A stretch of 64,000 nt of DNA from Paraphysomonas bandaiensis (Eukaryota; Protista; Chrysophyceae), in NCBI GenBank assembly GCA_965644295.1, contig CBFFRP010000212.1, forward strand, positions 51,509 to 115,508. The letters are read 5' to 3'. Each line of letters starts with the position of its first letter. Within the stretch, counting starts at the first letter, position 1. Both the position numbers and the translations under genes were made by a program. Under the pieces are notes generated by a model, which ran no database searches, had not been told where the DNA came from, and was given only the letters and a program-made list of their open reading frames with translations. Positions 28,669-64,000 of this stretch are shown one piece after another.

Positions 28669-28741
28669 CGATCTACCTCGGACTCGAACCGAGAACCTCC
28701 ACATCCGAAGTGTGGCGCGCTATCCATTACGCCAGCAGACC
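28669..28741 (-). tRNA. tRNA-Arg (anticodon UCG)
   Basis: GGTCTGCTGGCGTAATGGATAGCGCGCCACACT-TCG-GATGTGGAGGTTCTCGGTTCGAGTCCGAGGTAGATCG folds as a cloverleaf with a GGTTCGA T-loop, followed by an oligo-T Pol III terminator. Confidence 0.95.
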
Positions 28742-39978: not shown

Positions 39979-42961
39979 TTACAGGAAGAACATTGACGAC
40001 GGTACACCACCGCGCTGAGACCAGGTCTTCGATATTTCTCTCAGCTCCTGTGACGACACTCCAGACGTATAGAGTTTCCTGGCGCGGGTAGCAGCCAAGT
40101 GTGCATAAGCAGCGGGAGTCGCCTTTGACATAGATTTATTGCATCTGGAGTATAAGTAACAGTTCCAATATGTAAAAATTGCCAGCTGCTCATTGGATAT
40201 ACCAATATCGTCGTATATAACTGAGTACCGCGCCATTTTAGCAGTTCCTTGTATGGCGACGTGAGACTGTATGTAGAATTCGTTCAGCGAGTTCATAGTA
40301 ATTCCACTTTCGTCACCAACACAAACACCAGGGCAGCAGTTGATGTAGCTGTTGTTGCCTTCATCAAAAGCAAACCTGCTACTGTGACCTTTGGAACATA
40401 TCACAAAGGTCAACTTGGTATCAAGACACCCCATACACTCCATCGCTTGTTGGATGGCCGGGACTTCAAGGAATCGCACTCGTTGAAATTGGCCATGAGA
40501 CACACCATCTCTAAAAACAAACAGATATATCAGTAAAAGCGGATAGTTCACTATCTCATAGATGGAGCACACCTGTATACAATAACTCTCTTGGGCATTT
40601 GGTTACCATTTTGCTTCTTGAAGGCCTCGAAAAGCTCAACCATTAGATCCTCCAGTTGTGTTACCTCCTCCTCCCGCGAAGCTTGTGCAGATATGCTAGC
40701 TGCATATTGCGTAGTCTCGCGATTGATAGACCCCACTACAGCAGCGATGGACTCCGACTTGCTGCCAGGTTCAGCGTGACTGACATCTATCCCAACCAGC
40801 ATACACAGTTCGTCGAACACCCATCCCGGAGGATGCTCTGGAACACTGCGTTCTCCACCAGGTCTTCGTAGAATGTGGTTGACTCCACCCAACTTTGTAT
40901 TTATCTTCAATACCAGATTGTCCATTATGCCCTTCGGCTTCCTCTTCACTGTGTCCCACAATACACATTGAGTTACTAATGGTATGGTATCGGCCAACTG
41001 TTTCACTAGCCCATAAAGACGTTTGTCACCCAGCAGTACAATCGCAATGGCACCACCGTGTTTTCGCATATCGAGAAGATTATTTAGTATGTTGTCTTCA
41101 ACGTCGTTGCTCGTCAAAATTGGCCCTCCAGGTTTCAAAGGCATGCCCATTTCGTCCATTGACATCTGTAGCTGCCTCTCAAAGTCCTCACATATTCTTT
41201 TATTTTCCATAGCAGTATTGATTATGGCTAGGATTCCGTACATGATTTTGTCCGAACGCCCATCAGTCGGGCGCGCTGGGCTAACGAAGCCAGTCTTAGG
41301 CGAGAACCATTGTCCTTTCAACTCTGGTTCCACAACTGTATCACGGTATTGCAGTACAGCATTGGGTAAAATAGTGGCAGGAACCGATAGCGGCTCGGAT
41401 GAGACACCGGTAAATCCGAATTGATTAGCAACAGGATCCCGCTGGAGTACACTGATAAGACCTACACCCTCATCATCCCCAGAAATGATGTGCTGAAACC
41501 GGTCCCGTGGACGAGCCGCCGCCGTACGGATAACCTCTGCAGTCATTTTTTCCGTGTATGCCTTCAAGCGTACGCTCTGGCCTTGAGCTACGTCCACAAG
41601 TTCAAGTGGAACCCAGACTGGCCTTTTTCTGGAGGTTACATTGATTGTAGGAAGGTAAGGATGTTTAAGACGTGAGTAAGCCGATGACTGCTCAGACATA
41701 ATGTCAAAGTATTCCGCTACTGTAACATAATTCCCTTCGAATTCAAACTTCGATTCCGGGCTATTAGCAGGAGGACCCAAGCCTTTGAACTTCCGATTAT
41801 GCCGCAAATGAGTCACAAGTATCTTTGCTCCCTTCATGACGTTTTCGATATTCTCGATCTGTCTGCGCTGAAGGCCACGCTGTGAGCACTGGCGGATGAA
41901 GTCCTCCGGACGACGACACTCTGCTGCTAGACTGATTACGCCCAGAGCTGGCCCGCCACTCAGAAAGCATGACACGGCCATGTCACTTACAAGCATAAGG
42001 CCTGCCATGCAAGCCTTGAGCGATGAGTGGTAACCTCTTTTTATGTAGTAAGGGGTCCCATCTACGAACTGGCTAGCCTGTGCCCGATAAGCATTGGACT
42101 GCACTACGAACCACTCCGGAGGATCGGCGTACTGTCCCGATCTGGCAAATGAAAGCGCAACCAAATCGAGTGCACGCAGGCAAGCTTCAGAAGATTCTGG
42201 CCGAGTTACATCATGTTTGGATAATACAGTTGCTGCAGTAAGCTTGACCATATAATTTCGAGAGGAGGTCACACCGACCACTTTTACCTCTTCTACTAAC
42301 TCTGGTACAGGAACAGTACCATCTTCTTCATCAGGGTTAGCTTCGGGAAGAGGTAGTGGAGCGGAAGTGAACACAGTGGAGCGGCTGTCGTAAGTCCATC
42401 CTATGGACTTCCAATCTGGATGGTTATCGCGGAGAATAGAGACAATAGAGTTGGTTACTCTATAGTCCTCCACAGGGGCGATATCAGACGACATGTCAAA
42501 TGACCCATCGCTCTGTCGACGGTATATCTTCAGATGATACTGATATATCGTATCAACCAACTTTGACACATCGACGGGGAAGTGGTTCGTGACGACCCGT
42601 AAACGACTCGTCGACGTCGACTGGCACCGCCATTCGGAGCGAGGAGGAAATGACGATAAGTCCTCCTCACAGCGCCCTTTGGGGGGTTGAAGGATGCACC
42701 GCCAATCAGATGATCGTGCCATGCTCTTTATGTGTCCGATATCCCCCATCTTAGTCTCTCTTCCCCCTCCTCTGCCCCCTCTGCCTCCTCTGCCCCCTCC
42801 ATCTCGACCGCGGTCTCCTCTATCACCACCACGTCTATCATCTCTCCCTCTGTCTCTGTAGTAGTCTCTGTCTCTGTCATCTGTCACATCAACACAGAGA
42901 CTCTTGTTGGATCATGTCATATCTATAGTCATACAGACATACCGTATCGTCGTCCAGACAT
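39979..42961 (-). CDS. AGO: Argonaute (eukaryotic AGO-like: RGG N-terminus, N, PAZ, MID, PIWI), 3 exons
   Basis: Exon 1 MSGRRY (ATG 42961) with an intron to 42881. Motifs VTNHF, YDSRS, PLELV, LKINTKLGGVN, GIDVSH, IVYR/DGVS (intron ~40511-40571), QSHVAIQGT, PAAYAHLAA, and C-terminal MFFL. Confidence 0.96.
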
Positions 42962-45439: not shown

Positions 45440-48400
45440 CTACATCATGGAAGCTTTGAATCGAAAGAGAGTAAATGCCAGCAGTATGTACGCTGCAGTG
45501 ATAATGCAAAGCATTCCAATAGTAAAGCGTCTGTCTCCGTTCCCATTCTGCTCAAACGTCATCCCATAAGCTTTCACAATTTCTTCTCCTTCTGTATAAG
45601 GACAGGGCTCAACTTCGCAGTCAAACGTTTCTCCGTTGAACACGTAATTGGTGAGGAGGACACTGCCCCAACGCATTGGAGAAATATAGGAAATGTAGCG
45701 AAGAACGAGCGGCATATTGAGAGATATAAACCCCGCAAGCGTACAAAAGATAGCCAGTGTACAGCTCAACATATCAATTGCTACGCCAATATTTGAGAAA
45801 ATCGTGAAAGAAGCGATGCCTATCGCCTCGCCACATAGAATATAACAAATGACAGTAAGAACCATATGCCAGTACGTAACCTCAGTGTCCTGAAGTTCTA
45901 CAACATAGCATACAAGAGCAGAAATTATAAACCCAAGAATAACAACAAACGGGAGACCCTGAAGTATATACGTCACAAAAAATGCAAAGGCTGAGTATCC
46001 ACCCTGCTTGTATTCCCTGTAGAATACTTCGCGCTGATCAGGGAAGGTCGATATGCTGGTGAGAACACCCACAAACCCCAGAGCAGTGAGCTCATAGAGA
46101 CACCCGATCCTGTTCTGAATAGACTCTTGCGAGTGTTGTAGCGGTGCATAAAAGAGACACCAGATAAGTGTTAAACTAAGCGCATGCACAATTCGATCCG
46201 CACAAATACTTTTTTGTCTCAACATATTCTTGTACGCCCTTTGAACAAGAAGCGGTAAAGTGTAGACTATACTCTTGTCGTGAATCTCATCGAACTCATA
46301 CTCATCTATTCCCGTGTTCTCTCGGCGTCCGATCTTGTCGTCCACCGTCACTACTTTATTGTAAGCTTTGACGAGTCGCTTTAGGCGCCTCCGAGTCTTT
46401 TTTTCTTGTTTCTCATTTGTCAGGTCAATTGAGGACATCTCCAATATGAAGTCTGCTGGATTATAATATTTAGGGCATGGGTACCCAAGATCATTAAGAT
46501 GTTCCAACAAACGTCTTCGGCTTCCAGACCACACTACCTCCCCTTTCGATAAAAGTATAATATCATCGAACTTATCGTAAATATCATATCGCGGCTGGTG
46601 AATGGTAAGCGCTACTGCCTTGCCTTCTTCATGGGCCAGCCGTCGCAGAACCTTAATTATACGACTTGCTGTGAAAGAGTCTAAGCCAGTGGTCGGCTGT
46701 AGTATGAAAACAGAGAAAATGTGAGTGCAAAGTAAAAAAGATTGCGGTAAAAGAATACCTCGTCTAAGAGACACACCACGGGATCAAGAAGTAGCTCACA
46801 TCCAATAGAAACACGCTTTAGTTCACCTCCACTGATCCCTTTTACCCCATTTCCGCCTGTAGTGCTCATTAGATTCGTTACAGCAAATAAAACACAACGA
46901 GAGTTTTCACCTATATACGTATTTAAACACCCAACAAGGCCAAGACTATCAGCCACAGAGTAGATTATTGATTGTTTCTCTTCAAGAGAGAGACTGTTGT
47001 CCAAATGCATATGCGCATGAAAGAGAAAAGTCTCATACACAGTTAAGCTCGGCATATGGCGATCAAACTGCACAACGTAGCCAATTGTATGTCTTAACTT
47101 GCTTTTAGGTAACGAAACGCCGTTGAATGTTACAGTGCCAGTGCCATACACTCGGTCTTGAAAAAATGTCGAGAGCCAGTGAGTGAGTGAAACATCACTC
47201 TTAAAAGGCCGCCGAATCCGCTGACATATGACGTTCAACAACGATGTTTTCCCACTACCACTCCCCCCCATAATTGCAACTAGACGTCCGCTATGAATTT
47301 TACATGTCACATGCTTCAAAATATGCTGAAAAGTTATATTTCGCTTGCTCGCAGAGGGTGATCGCACTCGAGTTGCCTTGTACAGGCAAACATCGTTTAC
47401 TGATATATCCAGTTTGCTGTCATATAGAGAAAGTTGCGATGTGATGGACGATTGTGTTCCGGCTGTGTTAGCTAAAGCAGTAACGGTTGAATCCGTGAGA
47501 GACTTGGATTGTTGCTGTTCACTATATTTATTCGTTGTTGGACGAACGCATAAGAGCAGTGCAAACGCGAGTACGTAATACACAGTCACAATAGGCAGTA
47601 GATGTTTCCATTCCGTAAGGTGGGCGTCTTTTCGTATGCCAAGCAAATTCAGATAGTCGTTACCAGAATATTCAACATCGATGCAATCTGCACTGGGCTC
47701 TATCACAGTACATGATGTAAATCTTCTGTTCGACACCTCATTTGCCATCAGGATATCATAGGAGTATGTCAGAAAACTTATTGTACTAATCCATCGTACA
47801 TACAGTGGCATGGTCTGAGTATTGACAACAAATCCAGATGCCAGGGAAAAAAAGGTGAACTGCATGTTCGCTATAATTGAAGACACAGAAAACGAGCGGT
47901 GACAAGCGGTGGAGAACCATGCAATACCGAGCATTCCAAAGCTAACAGAAACATTTGCCGCAAAATATATCCAACCAGCTTCCCAATTGGTTCTAAGATT
48001 GCTACCCAGATACACAGGTAGGGAGTAGTGTAAAGTGTGTAGCACAAGGCCCGGAGAAGAAGCCAGAATCTGCGCAGTAAAAAAAGCCGAATGAGTGTAC
48101 ATGTGGTCTAGACGTTCGCGGTCAAAAAACTTCAGCTCTTCAGTGAGTTCCTTAATAAGCGCAATCATGTGAAGGTATGGCCCTAGAGAGAGAAGCACAT
48201 ACATCAAGCCTGCACGAGATGTCAGATCTTCATAGGAATCACCCAGCTGCCAGAATATTAAACTAATTATTACGCCCAACACCCCCGCCTGCACGCAGTT
48301 CCCTATAAGCTTCTTAAGATTGCGGCGACGGCTTATAAAGAACCTCGAGGTCAGCCAAAGCACCTGGTATAGCCAAGGGGCTATATCATTTGTATCGTCA

Positions 48401-50057
48401 AACATGTTGTCATGTCTACCAATAATTCGAGTGATATGTCGAGAGCTTATTCCATATGTGAGAGGGGCTGGTAGTTCTCGCTGTCTCGGTATAACAGGAG
48501 TCCCAGACAGCCTTGCAGCGCTGGCATTATTTACGTCGGAGTACTTTCGTATGAGTTTATTTATTCGAGCAGTGTCTGCGAAGGCCCCATCATCATCGGA
48601 TGATATAGACATCATGTCGATGAAGTAGTCTGCAGGGTTGCAGTGCCGCGGACAACAGTGCCCCATAGACTCGAAGTACGATATCATCTGCGAGGTCTTA
48701 CCACAATACGTTGGATGTCCCTTGCAAATCAGCAGGATAGAGTCGAACATATTAAATATATCCGCTCTTGGCTGGTGCAGAGTGCAAAGTGCAGCCTTAA
48801 GTCCTGTTGAGGTCACCACCTCCTTCAGAGTCTCCACTACATACTGGGCAGTGAATGAATCCAAGCCTGAAGTAAGCTCATCCGCACAGAGAATGTCGGG
48901 TTCAGATATAAGCTGAACTGCAATAGAGAGACGCCGTAGCTCACCCCCCGATGGTCCATTCTCTTTGGAACTGGAAGCTATCCTTAGATCTGCGCAATCT
49001 TTAAGCCCCAAATTCATAATTAATTCTTGTGTGAGCTTTTCGCACTCTGGCACCCCGCCACAGGGCAAATGGCAACGGAATGAACGCTGCGACCTCATAC
49101 GGGCTACGAACTGGATCGTCTCCCGAACGGTTAAATAAGGAAAGAAAACGTCGTCCTGAGGGATGTACCCAATAACGCATCGCGACATACCCTCAAACGA
49201 CAAGGACCCACTAAACTCCAAACGTTGTCTGTCGTACCGCCCTGCAATGGCATTTAGCAGAGTCGTCTTACCTGTGAAAACATATTAGTACTTCAGCTCA
49301 AGTAGAAAGACAGTTACAGTTTCTATACAAAATATATGAAGAGACCCGAGAGCTTACCACTGCCGCTTCCACCAAGTATCCCAAACATTGATTCACATGG
49401 CAGTGTTGTGGTGATTGGGTGCATCAGGACTTTCTTCGAGTTTTTCAGCTTAATGGAGAACTCATTGAACACAATTCTGCTATTCTTGGGACTGTCGAGG
49501 ATATCAATACCATCATCAGTCGCAAACCCGTCGTTTTGTGTCATGTCGCACAAATCCGCTTCATTGGAGTCATAAACATCGCTAGCATTAGCCAACCAGT
49601 GCTCAGAAGAACCAGTTTTCGTATGGCCGAATGAGCCAAACGACCCTAGACGATTCATTTCCACCTTGCTGTTGATCTTTGCCACACCAACTTTAGGAGG
49701 TGAATTAAACACAGAAGATCGCTGTGCATCTGAGGGAAAGTAGCTCGAGTATGTCTTCAAGTTTCTCTCTTTGCCACTTCGAGACCTGCTTCCAGATGAC
49801 TGCTTGCTCTCACGTGACAATTTACTTGAGGTGCTGAAGGAAGAGATGCTGCCTACAGATACACTCGATGCCTTCCTGGTAAACTCGTGAGTTCTTCCGA
49901 TCGCCTTGTTTTCTCTTCCACTGGCGTCATCAGGCAGCCTCGACATACTCGTAGATATCGTGCTCGTTGACTCCATCGACCGCGGCGAGATGCTACCATT
50001 GCTACTGACGCCCCCATTTGAACAGCTCTTATAAGAATGAGGGCCACTCGATTTCAT
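45440..50057 (-). CDS. Full-size ABCG transporter (NBD-TMD-NBD-TMD) with Ser-rich N-terminal extension
   Basis: Walker A GGSGSGK(T)T twice, signatures SGGELRR and GISGGELKR, DELTSGLDS and DEPTTGLDS, HQPR twice, NPADY/NPADF, and two TM domains. Confidence 0.95.
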
Positions 50058-51448: not shown

Positions 51449-52381
51449 CTATGTCCTATTCCCTAACATAAATGAACTACATGCCCCACATTGCGGCCCC
51501 TCCTGAGGACCGCACATACACCCTGGTCCACACTGGCAATCCGGGTTGGCACAGCAGGTGGTGGGTTCTTTGCGAGGGTAGTCTACACCCTCTACTTGGT
51601 CGTAGAAATCCACATGGTCACCTGTCTTAAATAATTCTTCGACTACGATGCGCACACACTTCAACGCGCTCGTATATGGAGACACAAGCTGCCCTTTTTC
51701 GTGCATTCCGCGGCACATGGACTGTATACCACTGTCAACATCACTGCTACTGCGGATAATTTCTTGCATGGCAGTATCCAGTGGGCCAGGGGCGTAATTA
51801 AGAACGCGGACGTTAGAACTTCCCGATAGTTCGCCTGCGATAACTTCAAAATACATCTCTACAGCAGCTTTGGTCGCGCAGTATGCACCAAAGCTCGAAG
51901 CAGGTTCCACAGCCCATAGAGACGATACATTGACTAGTATTACTCTAGCCGCAGTTTCAGAAGCTTTGATGCGACGAAGAAATTCAGATACAAGAATACA
52001 TGGGGACGTAACGTTCAGTTGTATAGTTTTAGAAAAACAGTCTATGTCTAATTCAGAACCAACAGGCTGTACTGGAAGCAGGGTGCCTGCGTTGTTGATG
52101 TAAACGATTTTCGAATAGGAGAAAGATCTATCGAGAATACGAGATGCTACATCCTCCAGACCATCCCCACTTGCTAAATCAGCTACAATAACTTCACATT
52201 TGGTAGATTTTCCCGGTCTACAGCTTTCAATTTCTCTAGCAGTTTCCTCCAAAGCAGATGCAGATCTCCCAACCAAAACACAATCCAATGAACAGAGAAG
52301 TGTTTCAGCGAAGGCAACACATAGTGCCTTTCCGAATCCCCTAGAGGCACCAGTAACTATCAAGAGATAACTGCAGACCAT
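51449..52381 (-). CDS. SPR: Sepiapterin reductase-like SDR with a Cys-rich C-terminal tail
   Basis: TGASRGFG, NNAG, NVSS, YCATK, LNYAPGPLDTAMQ and GDHVDFYD. Intronless. Confidence 0.88.
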   Translation of the reverse strand: MVCSYLLIVTGASRGFGKALCVAFAETLLCSLDCVLVGRSASALEETAREIESCRPGKSTKCEVIVADLASGDGLEDVASRILDRSFSYSKIVYINNAGTLLPVQPVGSELDIDCFSKTIQLNVTSPCILVSEFLRRIKASETAARVILVNVSSLWAVEPASSFGAYCATKAAVEMYFEVIAGELSGSSNVRVLNYAPGPLDTAMQEIIRSSSDVDSGIQSMCRGMHEKGQLVSPYTSALKCVRIVVEELFKTGDHVDFYDQVEGVDYPRKEPTTCCANPDCQCGPGCMCGPQEGPQCGACSSFMLGNRT

Positions 52382-52848
52382 TCCTCTATATAATAATGAG
52401 TACTTCAAGACTTCAAGCCTAGTGTTGCCTTAGTTTGTTCTGTTGTTGTAAAATTATTGGAATTGCTCCCCATCCACCTCGAGACCTTCATTCCTGTTCT
52501 GTCTGTGGGGGAAGTTGTCAATCTAGCAAAAAAATCGTAAAGCAGGATGCGTATTTGGGTTTTAGACTTGAGGGACTTTGAAATACTGTACCATGGGTTT
52601 TAATATCAAAGTTGACATATTTTTGCCATGGATTTTCTAATATTTCAATTTCAAAAATTTCTAATATCTCAGAATAGGCTTTTTTGAGATTTTGGGATTT
52701 TAGGCCATTAAAAATGGCCAAATCACATATTGAAAAAGAAAACTACTGACCACTTTCACTCTTCGAATGAATACGAATGAAAGTATAATACAGTCAGCGG
52801 ATTGGAGTTTATGATTTCCTTCAACAACTTCTTCCACTTCCATGTGAT

Positions 52849-54608: not shown

Positions 54609-57157
54609 TTAGTACTCAGAACACAATCCGGATGACGCATCAGGTCCCATGTAGAATTCCAGTGTATTCCCATTAAGAGCATGTTGGAATAAGATATCGT
54701 GCTCAATGACGGGCGACTTGTATTCTTCATCACCAATAATGAGCCTCTGCACGTACACATTTTCATCAGTATTGTTATACGCAGTAATCTTTAATACGGC
54801 ATCAGGCCCGTCCACGGAGCGCAGTACCAAGCTGGAAGAAGAAATGGACGGGCTACCAATGAAGTAGCGGTCAGTACCGGCCTGAGGAAATAACCCAAGG
54901 GAAGTGAAGAGCAAAAAAGAGCTCATGGATCCGTAGTCGTCATTGCCCGGTAGACCCTCAGGAGTAGCCGAGAAGTGCATGGGAATAATCTTGCGGGACC
55001 AGTATTGAGATCGCGTGCAGTCCAATAAGTTGAAAAACCAAAGAGTGGCATGACACACTTCGTTGCCAGCCCAGAAGTAAGGATTAGGAAGGAAGGACCC
55101 GATATGGTCGTGGGACTCAACATGCTTCTCGAAAAATGTTTCCAGGGACGACAGAAAATGATTTTTGGTAGGGAAAAGATCAATAAGGCCTTGCATGTCA
55201 TGTGGAACAAAGTAGAGCCAGTGAAATGCATCCCCCTCCTTGTACATATTCCAGCTTTGGGGCCCGATAGGATCCAGCGGACAATGCAGCTCCCCAGCTT
55301 CCGATTTTGAACACATCAATTCACGCAAAGGAGACCATATGTTTTTGTAGTTCTTGCTTCGAGACTGCGCTTCCTCTGCTACACTGAAGTCTTCCGTATA
55401 CTTAGACACACCAGCCAATAGAAAATCATCGAAGGCATATGACAGGGTAAGTGAGGCGGCAATGTCACTGGACTCCGTAGGCACATAGCCGTGTTCTAGA
55501 TAGAACTCAACACTGTTTCGACCATTAGGTGCACCAGGAACGGTTGCCTGCTCCAACATAGCGGCCTGAATCTCGGTAACATTGAAGTAATCGTCGTAAC
55601 CCTTTAGTAGACCCTCCAGAACCGCCGCAGCCCCATGCATGCCGATCATGCACCCACTCTCAGTACTCCCTAGAACCCAGCGTGGGAATGCCCCAGTTGT
55701 TTTTACCATGTCCTCTATACTCCTAAGAATACCTGATACAAGTAACCGTTATGCCATGCAATCAGCTGGATGGGATACACATACCGATGCCAAGGTCTTT
55801 TGTGGCCAGTAGTTGCCAGGGGAGCATAGCTCTGAAGGTATCCCACAGTGAAAGGTCTGAGAAGTAGGCCGTTGTGAGATCTTTCGAATCCCATGAAATT
55901 CCTCTATCCTCACTGACACTGTGTACCTTCTTATCCATCCCGAGGTACACTCCCCCAATTTCGGAATACACAGTAGGAGACATGAGGGTTCTGTAGTGGG
56001 CGGTATGCAGCTGCGTGAGAAGGTCTTCGCGGTCAATAGTGGAAACATCGATACCAACGCGGAAACGGTCAAGAGTATCGCACCACACACTTGTTGTTCT
56101 CTCGAGAGCCGCGTCGAATAATTGGTCCGAGCTGCTGGCGGAAAATTCAGACATTGCTGCCTCGAGGTTGATGCGAGCCTGTTCCTCACTGATGAAACTA
56201 ATTCCTACTCGCATCTACTACACAGTTAGGCATACATTTCAAGTACATCCAAGTTTTACTTACTTCGACAGCATGTCCTCCAGTTAGGCTAGCTAGGGCA
56301 TAAAGCCGACCGTCTTGTGATTCAGCCTCAAGTGACGTGCTGTCACATACACTGGCGGACTTGTTTCCATTACAGATTGTCCATCCACTCAGCCCTGTCC
56401 CCTCCAATTTCCCGTATATATATACCCATATCCCATGGCTCAGAGACCCATCAATTAATACCCGCCCAGTAAAAGACGAGAGAGAGGGGTCTACCTCCAA
56501 TCCAGCGTCCAAGCACTGTGGTGCGTCTGTCTGCAACAGTGCTGCAGCGTGGCAGATGTCCACCACCACCCCAAGTTGATCCTCCCCAGGCCCGGAGCTA
56601 AAATTGTACTTATGAATACCTGCGAACTCACTCACTGCAACCATCTCTGCAGATGCAGATGGGAGGTCTAAGAACACTGAATAGTAACCGGGCCTTGCAA
56701 CTTCCGTTTCTTTTCTAAAGGTGCTCCACCAAGTTGACTCAGTGGAAGAGAGTGCATCTGTAGTTAGATTTCTAACAGGCATCACTCCAAATGTTCCAAG
56801 ATCACTCACTCCAGCTCCAACTAGTCGGGTGTGCGAAAATCCTCGGATCATTGTGTCGTAATAGTTGTAGCCACTGAAGTGACGGAACTCAATATTTGCC
56901 GGTGAACTGGTAGTGTCCGGCCCAATCCTGAGTGCGCCATACGGTACTTGCGCTGCTGGGGAGACTATGATATAATAAACATATTTAACATTGATAGCAA
57001 GAAAAAGGAGTGTGTTACCAGATCCATAACCGAAACCAGGTCCAGAGCTCCCTATGAACACATCTACCGCGTCCAGACTACCGCTGTCACAGGAGGAGGA
57101 TGCGGCTACACACAATGAAAGAATCACTGCGGTCCGTGGTAGCAAATAGGTCAACAT
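54609..57157 (-). CDS. Secreted GH92 alpha-1,2-mannosidase
   Basis: Signal peptide, PAAQVPYG, GFSHTRLVGAG, EVARPGYY, SLWDTFRA, CMIG, SLTLSYAFDD, YKEG, FVPHD, WAGNE and GNDDYGSMS. Confidence 0.95.
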
Positions 57158-57520
57158 AGTGGATATATGTATGGGTGAAGTGTTGTGACAGGATGCACTA
57201 TTGTGCTACTGAATATATACGGCAGCTTATACACACAGTACCATACCATAGAGGAGAACTATACCCTTTCAGCTTTTCTGTAAAATTTCGAAATTTATAG
57301 GCCAGTAAACCAGAGTTTCTAGGTTGGAATGTAGTGTAAAAGACAACTAATCTATCATATAAAAGGGATGTTTTCGGGAGGTAGATATCAGCCATATACT
57401 GAATATGGGGCCACAGCATGATAATGATACAAGAAGACAACAACTATATATTGCAATCCTATTGAATGAAGAGCGATAGATATGCATTAGAAAGGTATGT
57501 GGAGGATAACTGACCACTGT

Positions 57521-60500
57521 TCAGGTTTCATTGGTGGATGGTGATGTGACATATGTCGATGACCTTTCGGACAAGGTATGAGTACAGATAGTATTGTATA
57601 GGTCGAGGGCGAGTTATATGCTGTATGTAGCTGATTAGTGTTCCCTGTGATATAACATCCATGCACCACTCTGATATTGTCGATTTCTGCGGCTTTAATA
57701 TGAGGATGCTCATACACCTGTGTTTTTGAGGGAGCTTATAAGTGAATACTGTTGACGTATGAAATGTGTTTTATATGTTGTTGTATGATCTTGACTGTGT
57801 ATAATGTTAATGTGTTATCAGGTTTCATTGGTGGATGGTGATGTGACATATGTCGATGACCTTTCGGACAAGGTATGAGTACAGATAGTATTGTATAGGT
57901 CGAGGGCGAGTTATATGCTGTATGTAGCTGATTAGTGTTCCCTGTGATATAACATCCATGCACCACTCTGATATTGTCGATTTCTGCGGCTTTAATATGA
58001 GGATGCTCATACACCTGTGTTTTTGAGGGAGCTTATAAGTGAACACTGTTGACGTATGAAATGTGTTTTATATGTTGTTGTATGATCTTGACTGTGTATA
58101 ATGTTAATGTGTTATCAGGTTTCATTGGTGGATGGTGATGTGACATATGTCGATGACCTTTCGGACAAGGTATGAGTACAGATAGTATTGTATAGGTCGA
58201 GGGCGAGTTATATGCTGTATGTAGCTGATTAGTGTTCCCTGTGATATAACATCCATGCACCACTCTGATATTGTCGATTTCTGCGGCTTTAATATGAGGA
58301 TGCTCATACACCTGTGTTTTTGAGGGAGCTTATAAGTGAACACTGTTGACGTATGAAATGTGTTTTATATGTTGTTGTATGATCTTGACTGTGTATAATG
58401 TTAATGTGTTATCAGGTTTCATTGGTGGATGGTGATGTGACATATGTCGATGACCTTTCGGACAAGGTATGAGTACAGATAGTATTGTATAGGTCGAGGG
58501 CGAGTTATATGCTGTATGTAGCTGATTAGTGTTCCCTGTGATATAACATCCATGCACCACTCTGATATTGTCGATTTCTGCGGCTTTAATATGAGGATGC
58601 TCATACACCTGTGTTTTTGAGGGAGCTTATAAGTGAACACTGTTGACGTATGAAATGTGTTTTATATGTTGTTGTATGATCTTGACTGTGTATAATGTTA
58701 ATGTGTTATCAGGTTTCATTGGTGGATGGTGATGTGACATATGTCGATGACCTTTCGGACAAGGTATGAGTACAGATAGTATTGTATAGGTCGAGGGCGA
58801 GTTATATGCTGTATGTAGCTGATTAGTGTTCCCTGTGATATAACATCCATGCACCACTCTGATATTGTCGATTTCTGCGGCTTTAATATGAGGATGCTCA
58901 TACACCTGTGTTTTTGAGGGAGCTTATAAGTGAACACTGTTGACGTATGAAATGTGTTTTATATGTTGTTGTATGATCTTGACTGTGTATAATGTTAATG
59001 TGTTATCAGGTTTCATTGGTGGATGGTGATGTGACATATGTCGATGACCTTTCGGACAAGGTATGAGTACAGATAGTATTGTATAGGTCGAGGGCGAGTT
59101 ATATGCTGTATGTAGCTGATTAGTGTTCCCTGTGATATAACATCCATGCACCACTCTGATATTGTCGATTTCTGCGGCTTTAATATGAGGATGCTCATAC
59201 ACCTGTGTTTTTGAGGGAGCTTATAAGTGAACACTGTTGACGTATGAAATGTGTTTTATATGTTGTTGTATGATCTTGACTGTGTATAATGTTAATGTGT
59301 TATCAGGTTTCATTGGTGGATGGTGATGTGACATATGTCGATGACCTTTCGGACAAGGTATGAGTACAGATAGTATTGTATAGGTCGAGGGCGAGTTATA
59401 TGCTGTATGTAGCTGATTAGTGTTCCCTGTGATATAACATCCATGCACCACTCTGATATTGTCGATTTCTGTGGTGATGTGACATATGTCGATGACCTTT
59501 CGGACAAGGTATGAGTACAGATAGTATTGTATAGGTCGAGGGCGAGTTATATGCTGTATGTAGCTGATTAGTGTTCCCTGTGATATAACATCCATGCACC
59601 ACTCTGATATTGTCGATTTCTGCGGCTTTAATATGAGGATGCTCATACACCTGTGTTTTTGAGGGAGCTTATAAGTGAACACTGTTGACGTATGAAATGT
59701 GTTTTATATGTTGTTGTATGATCTTGACTGTGTATAATGTTAATGTGTTATCAGGTTTCATTGGTGGATGGTGATGTGACATATGTCGATGACCTTTCGG
59801 ACAAGGTATGAGTACAGATAGTATTGTATAGGTCGAGGGCGAGTTATATGCTGTATGTAGCTGATTAGTGTTCCCTGTGATATAACATCCATGCACCACT
59901 CTGATATTGTCGATTTCTGCGGCTTTAATATGAGGATGCTCATACACCTGTGTTTTTGAGGGAGCTTATAAGTGAACACTGTTGACGTATGAAATGTGTT
60001 TTATATGTTGTTGTATGATCTTGACTGTGTATAATGTTAATGTGTTATCAGGTTTCATTGGTGGATGGTGATGTGACATATGTCGATGACCTTTCGGACA
60101 AGGTATGAGTACAGATAGTATTGTATAGGTCGAGGGCGAGTTATATGCTGTATGTAGCTGATTAGTGTTCCCTGTGATATAACATCCATGCACCACTCTG
60201 ATATTGTCGATTTCTGCGGCTTTAATATGAGGATGCTCATACACCTGTGTTTTTGAGGGAGCTTATAAGTGAACACTGTTGACGTATGAAATGTGTTTTA
60301 TATGTTGTTGTATGATCTTGACTGTGTATAATGTTAATGTGTTATCAGGTTTCATTGGTGGATGGTGATGTGACATATGTCGATGACCTTTCGGACAAGG
60401 TATGAGTACAGATAGTATTGTATAGGTCGAGGGCGAGTTATATGCTGTATGTAGCTGATTAGTGTTCCCTGTGATATAACATCCATGCACCACTCTGATA

Positions 60501-63500
60501 TTGTCGATTTCTGCGGCTTTAATATGAGGATGCTCATACACCTGTGTTTTTGAGGGAGCTTATAAGTGAACACTGTTGACGTATGAAATGTGTTTTATAT
60601 GTTGTTGTATGATCTTGACTGTGTATAATGTTAATGTGTTATCAGGTTTCATTGGTGGATGGTGATGTGACATATGTCGATGACCTTTCGGACAAGGTAT
60701 GAGTACAGATAGTATTGTATAGGTCGAGGGCGAGTTATATGCTGTATGTAGCTGATTAGTGTTCCCTGTGATATAACATCCATGCACCACTCTGATATTG
60801 TCGATTTCTGCGGCTTTAATATGAGGATGCTCATACACCTGTGTTTTTGAGGGAGCTTATAAGTGAATACTGTTGACGTATGAAATGTGTTTTATATGTT
60901 GTTGTATGATCTTGACTGTGTATAATGTTAATGTGTTATCAGGTTTCATTGGTGGATGGTGATGTGACATATGTCGATGACCTTTCGGACAAGGTATGAG
61001 TACAGATAGTATTGTATAGGTCGAGGGCGAGTTATATGCTGTATGTAGCTGATTAGTGTTCCCTGTGATATAACATCCATGCACCACTCTGATATTGTCG
61101 ATTTCTGCGGCTTTAATATGAGGATGCTCATACACCTGTGTTTTTGAGGGAGCTTATAAGTGAACACTGTTGACGTATGAAATGTGTTTTATATGTTGTT
61201 GTATGATCTTGACTGTGTATAATGTTAATGTGTTATCAGGTTTCATTGGTGGATGGTGATGTGACATATGTCGATGACCTTTCGGACAAGGTATGAGTAC
61301 AGATAGTATTGTATAGGTCGAGGGCGAGTTATATGCTGTATGTAGCTGATTAGTGTTCCCTGTGATATAACATCCATGCACCACTCTGATATTGTCGATT
61401 TCTGCGGCTTTAATATGAGGATGCTCATACACCTGTGTTTTTGAGGGAGCTTATAAGTGAACACTGTTGACGTATGAAATGTGTTTTATATGTTGTTGTA
61501 TGATCTTGACTGTGTATAATGTTAATGTGTTATCAGGTTTCATTGGTGGATGGTGATGTGACATATGTCGATGACCTTTCGGACAAGGTATGAGTACAGA
61601 TAGTATTGTATAGGTCGAGGGCGAGTTATATGCTGTATGTAGCTGATTAGTGTTCCCTGTGATATAACATCCATGCACCACTCTGATATTGTCGATTTCT
61701 GCGGCTTTAATATGAGGATGCTCATACACCTGTGTTTTTGAGGGAGCTTATAAGTGAACACTGTTGACGTATGAAATGTGTTTTATATGTTGTTGTATGA
61801 TCTTGACAGTGTATAATGTTAATGTGTTACTATGATCTTGACAGTGTATAATGTTAATGTGTTATCAGGTTTCATTGGTGGATGGTGATGTGACATATGT
61901 CGATGACCTTTCGGACAAGGTATGAGTACAGATAGTATTGTATAGGTCGAGGGCGAGTTATATGCTGTATGTAGCTGATTAGTGTTCCCTGTGATATAAC
62001 ATCCATGCACCACTCTGATATTGTCGATTTCTGCGGCTTTAATATGAGGATGCTCATACACCTGTGTTTTTGAGGGAGCTTATAAGTGAACACTGTTGAC
62101 GTATGAAATGTGTTTTATATGTTGTTGTATGATCTTGACTGTGTATAATGTTAATGTGTTATCAGGTTTCATTGGTGGATGGTGATGTGACATATGTCGA
62201 TGACCTTTCGGACAAGGTATGAGTACAGATAGTATTGTATAGGTCGAGGGCGAGTTATATGCTGTATGTAGCTGATTAGTGTTCCCTGTGATATAACATC
62301 CATGCACCACTCTGATATTGTCGATTTCTGCGGCTTTAATATGAGGATGCTCATACACCTGTGTTTTTGAGGGAGCTTATAAGTGAACACTGTTGACGTA
62401 TGAAATGTGTTTTATATGTTGTTGTATGATCTTGACTGTGTATAATGTTAATGTGTTATCAGGTTTCATTGGTGGATGGTGATGTGACATATGTCGATGA
62501 CCTTTCGGACAAGGTATGAGTACAGATAGTATTGTATAGGTCGAGGGCGAGTTATATGCTGTATGTAGCTGATTAGTGTTCCCTGTGATATAACATCCAT
62601 GCACCACTCTGATATTGTCGATTTCTGCGGCTTTAATATGAGGATGCTCATACACCTGTGTTTTTGAGGGAGCTTATAAGTGAATACTGTTGACGTATGA
62701 AATGTGTTTTATATGTTGTTGTATGATCTTGACTGTGTATAATGTTAATGTGTTATCAGGTTTCATTGGTGGATGGTGATGTGACATATGTCGATGACCT
62801 TTCGGACAAGGTATGAGTACAGATAGTATTGTATAGGTCGAGGGCGAGTTATATGCTGTATGTAGCTGATTAGTGTTCCCTGTGATATAACATCCATGCA
62901 CCACTCTGATATTGTCGATTTCTGCGGCTTTAATATGAGGATGCTCATACACCTGTGTTTTTGAGGGAGCTTATAAGTGAACACTGTTGACGTATGAAAT
63001 GTGTTTTATATGTTGTTGTATGATCTTGACTGTGTATAATGTTAATGTGTTATCAGGTTTCATTGGTGGATGGTGATGTGACATATGTCGATGACCTTTC
63101 GGACAAGGTATGAGTACAGATAGTATTGTATAGGTCGAGGGCGAGTTATATGCTGTATGTAGCTGATTAGTGTTCCCTGTGATATAACATCCATGCACCA
63201 CTCTGATATTGTCGATTTCTGCGGCTTTAATATGAGGATGCTCATACACCTGTGTTTTTGAGGGAGCTTATAAGTGAACACTGTTGACGTATGAAATGTG
63301 TTTTATATGTTGTTGTATGATCTTGACTGTGTATAATGTTAATGTGTTATCAGGTTTCATTGGTGGATGGTGATGTGACATATGTCGATGACCTTTCGGA
63401 CAAGGTATGAGTACAGATAGTATTGTATAGGTCGAGGGCGAGTTATATGCTGTATGTAGCTGATTAGTGTTCCCTGTGATATAACATCCATGCACCACTC

Positions 63501-64000
63501 TGATATTGTCGATTTCTGCGGCTTTAATATGAGGATGCTCATACACCTGTGTTTTTGAGGGAGCTTATAAGTGAACACTGTTGACGTATGAAATGTGTTT
63601 TATATGTTGTTGTATGATCTTGACTGTGTATAATGTTAATGTGTTATCAGGTTTCATTGGTGGATGGTGATGTGACATATGTCGATGACCTTTCGGACAA
63701 GGTATGAGTACAGATAGTATTGTATAGGTCGAGGGCGAGTTATATGCTGTATGTAGCTGATTAGTGTTCCCTGTGATATAACATCCATGCACCACTCTGA
63801 TATTGTCGATTTCTGCGGCTTTAATATGAGGATGCTCATACACCTGTGTTTTTGAGGGAGCTTATAAGTGAACACTGTTGACGTATGAAATGTGTTTTAT
63901 ATGTTGTTGTATGATCTTGACTGTGTATAATGTTAATGTGTTATCAGGTTTCATTGGTGGATGGTGATGTGACATATGTCGATGACCTTTCGGACAAGGT
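57521..64000. repeat. 297-bp tandem array, ~21 full units, running off the window end
   Basis: Identical ORFs recur every 297 bp. Exceptions are one 151-bp partial unit (~59470), one 35-bp internal duplication (~61795-61865) and a recurrent C/T variant. Confidence 0.98.

Follow-up and report, generated by a model that had tools for sequence, protein, structure and literature searches.

The tandem array at the end of the 64,000-nucleotide stretch of Paraphysomonas bandaiensis DNA analyzed here (the window) probably represents a tandemly amplified snoRNA locus with a spliced, noncoding host transcript, a reading to which we assign a probability of roughly 65%, splicing included. Its 51-nt cassettes, candidate noncoding exons, alternate with 246-nt intron-like spacers, and each spacer very probably carries a box C/D snoRNA that guides modification of G1266 in 18S rRNA. 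Five things were read directly from the DNA: the array itself, the features of the snoRNA, the match between guide and target, the fact that the guide occurs nowhere else in the genome, and the lack of a usable ORF.

Structure and extent of the array

TRF reported a 297-bp period from position 57521 to position 64000 of the window, with 95 to 99% matches, and anchor positions divide this plus-strand array into 22 units of 297 bp, two of them odd. The 51-nt cassette is present in 22 identical copies spaced 297 bp apart throughout, apart from one 448-bp and one 332-bp unit, and the sole variation among the regular units is C or T at unit position 223 (units 1, 11, and 17). The 448-bp unit (59307 to 59754, plus strand) runs through unit positions 1 to 168 and then restarts at position 15; it contains a truncated snoRNA (59423 to 59485) together with one full copy. 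The 332-bp unit (61537 to 61868, plus strand) has a 35-bp duplication immediately 5' of the acceptor. Unequal crossing-over is the probable mode of amplification, the boundary between units lying at the TCAG/G acceptor microhomology (here and below, slashes mark splice junctions or splice-like boundaries), and the near identity of the copies shows that the array is either recent or kept uniform. With copies this alike, a codon or selection signature across them is unreadable.

A search of the 669-contig assembly placed the array at a single locus, on the contig that contains the window (C212). The last base of this contig is window base 64000, and the far end of the array, along with any terminal exon or poly(A) signal, lies beyond the assembly; the copy numbers, 22 cassettes and 21 full snoRNAs, are lower bounds because the array reaches the contig end. 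Strand composition within the array is strongly skewed (GC skew, +0.32). ORFs of 72, 91, and 152 amino acids on its minus strand were considered and rejected as spurious, matching no Pfam family at an E value of 0.1 or better.

A predicted box C/D snoRNA in every unit

Box C/D snoRNAs are stable RNAs of about 70 to 120 nt that are bound by fibrillarin, Nop56, Nop58, and Snu13. The first of the 21 full copies predicted in the array spans 57640 to 57735 on the plus strand (96 nt) and was recognized from subthreshold Rfam matches, a covariance model (R1), guide pairing, and a test of the terminal stem. From 5' to 3', its parts are a stem strand (GUUCCC), box C (GUGAUAU), the guide CCAUGCACCACU, box D' (CUGA), a hairpin, box C' (UGAGGA), box D (UUGA), and the closing stem strand (GGGAGC). 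All full copies retain intact boxes, guide, and terminal stem. The conserved snoRNA had been overlooked in the first-pass annotation, although one lies in every intron-like spacer.

Three Rfam families match at one spot per unit, namely, RF00533 (Me18S-Gm1358), RF00300 (Z221/R21b), and RF00133 (SNORD33/32), and all of them guide one and the same 18S site. Their scores fall below the gathering thresholds, at 25.5 versus 50 bits for RF00533 (E = 0.04), 19.6 versus 44 bits for RF00300, and 18.3 versus 44 bits for RF00133; a gathering score is reached nowhere in the array, and the three models are animal and plant derived. We also used model R1, which was built from 12 environmental (metagenomic) homologues with the P. 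bandaiensis sequence left out. R1 aligned to the full copies over its full length at 42.2 bits (E = 7e-10 for the window and 7e-7 for the genome), a score that is partly circular in the 5' half because the training homologues had been picked by a pattern also present in the array snoRNA. The truncated copy, which lacks the 3' half, scored 30.6 bits, the 3' half contributing about 11.6 bits.

The terminal 6-bp stem, GUUCCC/GGGAGC, brackets boxes C and D and was equaled in 32 of 5,000 shuffles and in 49 of 5,000 tails taken from real DNA. Boxes C and D are both off consensus (GUGAUAU for RUGAUGA and UUGA for CUGA), and both keep their G-A dinucleotides, in keeping with the capacity to form a kink-turn. 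Position 6 of box C pairs with position 1 of box D, as A-U in the array and as G-C or U-A in the homologues, which compensates for the departure from consensus. Minimum free energy (MFE) folding of the snoRNA region gave a z-score of -0.13, which is not significant; a significant value is not expected of C/D snoRNAs. Scanning the metagenome with the snoRNA pattern recovered 26 loci, mostly good C/D snoRNAs of diverse eukaryotes, and no close relative of the array locus was found among these 26.

Guide, target, and conservation

The guide next to box D' pairs with the 18S rRNA of the same genome over 12 bp (11 Watson-Crick pairs and one G-U pair) directly adjoining CUGA, and its fifth paired nucleotide is G1266 of P. 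bandaiensis 18S rRNA. The equivalents of G1266 are Gm1271 in yeast (guided by snR40), Gm1328 in human (U32A), and Gm1272 in Arabidopsis (snoR21), and the site is conserved in Dictyostelium, where the guide is CD37, as well as in yeast, human, and Arabidopsis (PMC8817022, including its table). One of these known guides, snR40, also directs modification of Um898 in 25S rRNA (PMC4344503). The predicted snoRNA is thus, by target, the orthologue of snR40, U32A, and snoR21.

The guide sequence occurs 22 times in the 62.5-Mb genome, every time inside the array. A match with one mismatch on contig C238 was rejected as a chance occurrence, there being neither a box C nor a stem around it. For the second guide, 5' of box D, no convincing rRNA target was found; its best pairings in the rDNA carry four G-U pairs in 11 to 12 bp.

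Splice-like signals and organization of the unit

Every unit has the form TTGAC...TGTTATCAG/GTTTC...GACAAG/GTATGAGT. The first candidate exon occupies 57525 to 57575 (plus strand, 51 nt, copy 1 of 22), and the candidate intron that follows it, at 57576 to 57821 (plus strand, 246 nt), opens with the donor GTATGAGT, contains the branch-like sequences TTGAC and TTAAT, and ends in the acceptor TTATCAG. In line with the first-pass annotation, which had described a stop-free, phase 0 cassette of 51 nt with a branch-like site, an acceptor, and a donor in every unit, all 22 copies have this structure. The left edge of the array was also correctly located, coinciding exactly with an acceptor, with the first cassette starting at 57525.

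The unique flank supplies a donor of its own at 57495, followed by CTGAC and CAG, as had been proposed, and together these make up a strict intron-like segment of 30 nt (57495 to 57524, plus strand; GTATGT...CTGAC...TTCAG) that directly adjoins the first cassette. Because the strict pattern GTAWGT..CTRAY..YAG occurs elsewhere in the window at only about 0.08 per kb per strand, this micro-intron is beyond chance. It is shorter than the neighboring introns of 49 and 52 nt. On its 5' side lies a putative noncoding first exon (57390 to 57494, plus strand), the 3' end of which is the donor AAAG/GTATGT and the 5' end of which was placed by guesswork about 30 nt past a TATA motif. That motif, TATAAAA (57358 to 57364, plus strand), was found by motif scanning 137 nt 5' of the flank donor, inside the 337-nt gap that follows a divergent GH92 gene, and may be a promoter element of the host RNA.

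The introns of the GH92 neighbor, verified by eye, begin with GTAAGT or GTATGT and end with TAG or CAG. The donor of the cassette had been said to match the introns of this genome; donor and acceptor are similar to those of the GH92 introns, and the donor, GTATGA, departs from GTAAGT and GTATGT at position +6. The snoRNA begins 64 nt past the donor AAG/GTATGAGT and ends 86 nt before the acceptor TTATCAG/G, the latter distance being typical of splicing-dependent intronic C/D snoRNAs in vertebrates. An exon-intron organization of the cassette is therefore plausible, since the micro-intron abuts the first cassette, the signals resemble those of GH92, and the snoRNA sits where intronic snoRNAs usually do. 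The structural half of the earlier proposal, an amplified exon-intron cassette, is in this sense retained, but its coding half, a 17-aa repeat, is not, the cassette having neither an in-frame ATG nor relatives.

Two other snoRNA arrays in the same genome bear on the question of splicing. A U24 array on contig C375 has a 300-bp period, and its final exon copy, a degenerate one, precedes AATAAA; a U14 array on contig C434 has a 255-bp period. In both, as in the array described here, the period lies between 255 and 300 bp, the copies are nearly identical and point one way, and an acceptor, an exon, and a donor follow one another between snoRNAs. Their units, in contrast, have no sequence similarity to the C212 unit and carry other snoRNAs, and the exon of the U24 unit is 93 nt long rather than 51 nt.

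Less probably, the snoRNAs are not spliced unit by unit and are instead released from one polycistronic precursor or one large intron by endonucleolytic cuts and exonucleolytic trimming, as happens in plant, yeast, Euglena, and trypanosomatid clusters, the splice motifs within the units remaining unused. Donor- and acceptor-like motifs are not very improbable by chance within a 200-nt spacer, and the deviant +6 position of the cassette donor, set against the verified GTAAGT and GTATGT donors, agrees with such a scheme. However, the strict donor, branch site, and acceptor of the flank end exactly at the first cassette, which is hard to explain unless the cassette is an exon. Acceptor and then donor also follow each other in the U24 and U14 units, which are unrelated to this one, the U24 array closes with its degenerate exon and AATAAA, and the 86-nt gap between snoRNA and acceptor likewise argues for splicing.

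Coding capacity of the cassette

The cassette had been read as coding for at least 22 identical acidic repeats of 17 aa (VSLVDGDVTYVDDLSDK), joined by splicing. On the coding side, the cassette is 51 nt long and in phase 0, one frame is free of stops in 22 of 22 copies, splice signals are present, and an upstream coding exon may be unassembled or have escaped notice. We nevertheless consider this reading, in which the repeat gene might also serve as snoRNA host, very improbable. The open frame (frame 0) contains no ATG, neither within the cassette nor on the stretch from the upstream TAG to the flank donor, and frames 1 and 2 are closed. That TAG, noted previously at about 57477, is indeed present in phase 0 at 57477 to 57479, and the flank donor follows 15 nt later. 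The sole ATG open to the flank donor (57466) enters the cassette in frame 1, which meets a TGA stop at cassette position 23. Between the array and the divergent GH92 gene there are only 337 nt. Chance alone can account for the open frame, since stop-free 51-mers arise in about 0.30 of shuffles and the unit itself has 46 such windows among its 297.

Searches for relatives gave a similar picture. The first-pass annotation had suggested looking for single-copy paralogues or a parent gene, but a six-frame search of the genome with the 17-aa peptide and a genome-wide DNA pattern search for the cassette, allowing three mismatches, returned matches only in the array, and an exact 23-nt exon pattern had 0 matches in metagenome contigs. 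With no usable start, an in-frame TAG, closed alternative frames, and no relatives, the coding reading is rejected, and the short exons almost certainly code for nothing. The snoRNA within each intron-like spacer is sufficient reason by itself for the unit to exist, and it explains alone why the unit was kept and amplified.

A host RNA with a dual function, its introns yielding the snoRNA and its spliced exons encoding an acidic protein of 17-aa repeats from a non-AUG start or an unseen upstream exon, seems to us a shade less probable again. On that reading the phase 0 cassette, with its length a multiple of three, would not be accidental, and the number of repeats would vary with array length or by exon skipping; were it true, the dosage of a ribosome modification guide would be tied to a protein of variable copy number. 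The least likely of the explanations, also put forward earlier as a fallback in the form of a gene-derived satellite or pseudogene, is an inert, nontranscribed satellite (centromeric, subtelomeric, or at an assembly end) derived from a snoRNA-bearing gene fragment, because the near-identical copies, contig-end position, and GC skew that recommend it are outweighed by a single, nondispersed locus, by boxes, guide, and stem that are intact in every full copy, by the like arrangement of the U24 and U14 snoRNAs, and by the fact that no other place in the genome carries the guide to this 18S methylation site, which is widely conserved.

Relation to known snoRNA loci

The snoRNA of the array belongs by its guide with snR40, SNORD32A/U32A, snoR21/Z221, Drosophila Me18S-Gm1358, and Dictyostelium CD37, which have the same guide core, CAUGCACCAC, immediately followed by D' CUGA and selecting in every case one G, the bracketed one in GGUG[G]UGCAUGG. 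The order of box C, guide, D', C', box D, and terminal stem is shared with them too, as is the size (96 nt). The array snoRNA differs from this group in its subthreshold Rfam scores and in its GUGAUAU and UUGA boxes with the compensating A-U pair. Whereas snR40 uses a second guide for 25S Um898 (PMC4344503), the second guide of the array snoRNA has no recognizable target, and whereas the known guide genes are present in one or a few copies, here there are at least 21 in tandem.

In its packaging, the locus resembles SNORD116 and SNORD115 of the mammalian Prader-Willi region, with their IPW-type exons, where units of a short noncoding exon and an intron carrying one box C/D snoRNA are likewise near identical and repeated in tens of copies (PMC3413130 and PMC9369261). 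The SNORD116 and SNORD115 snoRNAs are eutherian specific, imprinted, and expressed in the brain, and they have no established rRNA target. P. bandaiensis, in contrast, is a free-living stramenopile, the guide carried by the array is a housekeeping one for rRNA, and the units, of only 297 bp, are predicted to be spliced.

The snoRNA clusters of plants, Euglena, and trypanosomatids, polycistronic or reiterated in tandem, are similarly arranged head to tail in one orientation, presumably giving rise to one precursor. Clusters in these organisms usually mix different snoRNAs, which are freed by nucleases without splicing of each gene. The P. bandaiensis array differs from the plant, Euglena, and trypanosomatid clusters in repeating a single snoRNA and in bracketing each copy with donor and acceptor signals.

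Conclusions

From these features we infer transcription, a promoter, splicing at each unit, processing, and accumulation of the snoRNA. On the reading that we favor, an amplified snoRNA locus with a spliced host, a long noncoding transcript would start in the 337-nt gap, possibly at the TATAAAA motif, and would be spliced first at the flank donor (between positions 57494 and 57495) and then at each unit. Every 246-nt intron would contribute one snoRNA, freed by debranching and by exonucleolytic trimming to ends protected by the snoRNP, and splicing would link the 51-nt exons in a noncoding RNA lacking a usable start codon. The D' guide of the snoRNA would then direct fibrillarin-type 2'-O-methylation of 18S G1266.

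For annotation, the locus illustrates that an apparent "satellite" at the end of a contig in a protist assembly can turn out to be an essential RNA gene and that splice sites on either side of a short open frame do not show that it is coding. The snoRNA itself is a routine housekeeping guide, and the interest of the locus lies in its packaging as exon-plus-intron modules, at least 21 of them at a single locus, a layout known mainly from the imprinted SNORD115 and SNORD116 loci, whose guides are without known rRNA targets. These arrays offer a simple system for studying how such repeats originate and how their uniformity is maintained. Judging from the U24, U14, and G1266 guide loci, the apparently heterotrophic P. 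bandaiensis seems to keep several of its core snoRNAs as arrays, which suggests a lineage-wide setting of snoRNA dosage by tandem amplification, as with rDNA.

Structure and setting of the 297-bp array

Tandem Repeats Finder, run on the window, returned a 297-bp period with 95 to 99% matches from 57521 to the window end. The 51-nt cassette GTTTC...GACAAG (first copy, 57525-57575) occurs 22 times on the + strand, at intervals of 297 bp apart from two odd units of 448 and 332 bp. The former is an internal restart, in which the sequence runs through unit positions 1-168 and then resumes at position 15, and the latter has a 35-bp duplication directly 5' of the acceptor; the sole variation among regular units is C or T at unit position 223 (units 1, 11, and 17). 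All units read TTGAC...TGTTATCAG/GTTTC...GACAAG/GTATGAGT, and the unique left flank, AAAG/GTATGT...CTGAC...TTCAG/, terminates exactly at the first cassette. These data confirm the first-pass annotation, which had described acceptor, branch-like, and donor signals in each tandem unit, a left edge falling at an acceptor, and a flank with its own donor and CTGAC..CAG. The window (G000:C212:51509-115508, G000 being the P. bandaiensis assembly) ends at the last base of the 115,508-base contig, which therefore truncates the array. No second site for the unit was found in the 62.5-Mb, 669-contig assembly. Between 58001 and 64000 the array is strongly strand-asymmetric (GC skew, ~+0.32; AT skew, ~-0.21), G and T being abundant on its + strand, the predicted transcribed strand.

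The neighboring genes lie on the minus strand: a tRNA gene (28669-28741; at 58 bits, the sole Rfam match in the window above its gathering score) and, from Pfam matches, an Argonaute/Piwi protein (40551-42887), an ABC-2 (ABCG-type) transporter divided among ORF pieces (45440-49221), a short-chain dehydrogenase (51449-52408), and, divergent from the array, a two-intron gene of the GH92 alpha-mannosidase family (54609-57157; both introns short).

A very probable box C/D snoRNA in each unit

A permissive-threshold Rfam scan of the unit placed three families at the same + strand spot in each unit: RF00533 snoMe18S-Gm1358 (25.5 bits; E, 0.04), RF00300 snoZ221/snoR21b (19.6 bits), and RF00133 SNORD33/32 (18.3 bits). 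All three are below their gathering scores and are therefore a lead, not a result. The boxes, guide, and stem of a box C/D snoRNA can be read on the + strand (copy 1, 57640-57735): stem GUUCCC, box C GUGAUAU, a 5-nt spacer, guide CCAUGCACCACU, and D' CUGA, followed by a small hairpin, C' UGAGGA, 18 nt, box D UUGA, and stem GGGAGC. A 6-bp terminal stem beside an NUGA box was equalled in 32 of 5000 shuffles and in 49 of 5000 real-DNA substitutions. MFE folding of the region was not significant, as expected for C/D snoRNAs.

A metagenome scan with the pattern TGAT-N(5-12)-CCATGCACCACTCTGA gave 26 loci, most of them textbook C/D snoRNAs from diverse eukaryotes. Twelve were aligned, terminal stem included and window sequence left out, to train a covariance model, R1, which gave every full-length array copy a score of 42.2 bits (E, 7e-10 within the window and 7e-7 genome-wide); the copy cut short in the 448-bp unit reached 30.6 bits. 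About 11.6 bits thus come from the 3' half (C', D, and stem), for which the homologues had not been selected. Box C position 6 and box D position 1 pair in the kink-turn, and in the homologues they covary, AUGAUGA occurring with CUGA (G-C) and AUGAUUA with AUGA (U-A); the array snoRNA combines GUGAUAU with UUGA, an A-U pair, so its deviation from the consensus is compensated. Overall, each unit very probably carries a real box C/D snoRNA, an element absent from the first-pass annotation. Two metagenome scans yielded no close relative of the array locus. One metagenome locus (L079) has another, different C/D snoRNA immediately downstream of the Gm-site snoRNA, and another (L098) has two Gm-site copies ~810 nt apart.

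The array as a candidate snoRNA host gene

The GH92 gene has two introns, of 49 and 52 nt, that can be read by eye; their donors are GTAAGT or GTATGT, their branch sites are of the CTAAC type, and their acceptors are TAG or CAG. The splice-like signals of the array fit these. Over the remaining 57 kb of the window, the strict pattern GTAWGT..CTRAY..YAG has a frequency of only ~0.08 per kb per strand, yet one match in the flank exactly abuts the first base of the first cassette; this is the strongest argument for the cassette as an exon. The unit donor lies 64 nt upstream of the snoRNA and the acceptor 86 nt downstream, a usual arrangement for intron-encoded C/D snoRNAs. The same acceptor-exon-donor grammar between snoRNAs is seen in the U24 array (C375; 300-bp period, 93-nt exon) and the U14 array (C434:87990-102345; 255-bp period, about 57 copies) of this genome. 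At the end of the U24 array (G000:C375:8600-8920; positions 300-620 of fetched stretch L105), a diverged cassette-exon copy has its acceptor AG changed to AC and its donor lost, with AATAAA ~150 nt beyond, an arrangement resembling the last exon of a host gene and its poly(A) signal. In the U14 array (L103, G000:C434:101400-103400, minus strand), TTGCAG/GG acceptor-like and G/GTATG donor-like sites lie between snoRNA copies; the 5' flank of this array showed no clear donor.

We infer from these signals, with a probability of about 0.65, that the array is a spliced non-coding host gene that would be transcribed and whose snoRNA would accumulate. The closest known architecture is the SNORD116/115 host locus, the comparison taking the predicted splicing of the array as given. 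Set against the splice-like signals, an unspliced polycistronic snoRNA array is an unlikely reading, if still one of some weight.

The first-pass annotation had taken each unit for an exon-intron cassette encoding a 17-aa repeat. The unit does look like an exon-intron cassette, given the flank pattern and the GH92-like signals, but the repeat protein is very improbable. The cassette is open in frame 0 but has no ATG there, and TGA closes frames 1 and 2. The phase-0 frame of the flank has a TAG at 57477, as had been cautioned, and then five ATG-less codons up to the donor. The only flank ATG open to the donor, at 57466, leaves two bases there and hence enters cassette frame 1, reaching a TGA after eight codons. 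A stop-free 51-nt frame occurs in ~30% of shuffles and in 46 of the 297 windows of the unit itself. Searches of the 62.5-Mb assembly with exons taken singly found no paralogue or parent gene, whether as DNA (up to 3 mismatches) or as peptide; a separate metagenome scan with a 23-nt exon pattern gave no environmental match to the cassette, and the minus-strand ORFs of the array matched no family. The start and stop positions, the chance frequency, and the lack of relatives therefore leave the open frame as the sole remaining support for coding. An inert satellite, set beside a snoRNA in every unit, is hardly credible.

Predicted 18S rRNA target

The rDNA of the same genome was located, and the snoRNA guides were paired against one unit. 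The D' guide forms 12 consecutive pairs with 18S rRNA (11 Watson-Crick and 1 G-U), starting directly at D', and its fifth nucleotide falls on G1266 (GGUG[G]UGCAUGGCCG); the second guide had no convincing target in this unit. Equivalent sites are Dictyostelium Gm1266 (CD37), yeast Gm1271 (snR40), human Gm1328 (U32A), and Arabidopsis Gm1272 (snoR21) (PMC8817022), and snR40 directs Gm1271 via its D' guide (PMC4344503). The snR40/U32A/snoR21 family is thus the closest by function, and the payload of the array is, on this pairing, a predicted intronic box C/D snoRNA for 18S Gm1266. In addition to the main rDNA units (C525 and C653), the genome has partial 18S matches on C196, C551, C437, C68, C197, and C420, whose breaks share the same model positions (4-1116, 1118-1145, and 1161-1659); they may be interrupted or fragmentary rDNA copies.

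A lone one-mismatch guide match outside the array was rejected, there being no snoRNA features around it. The 16-nt guide-plus-D' string occurs 22 times genome-wide, always within the array, and R1 found no copy elsewhere in the genome. Hence no source of a guide for this widely conserved modification is visible in the genome other than the array.
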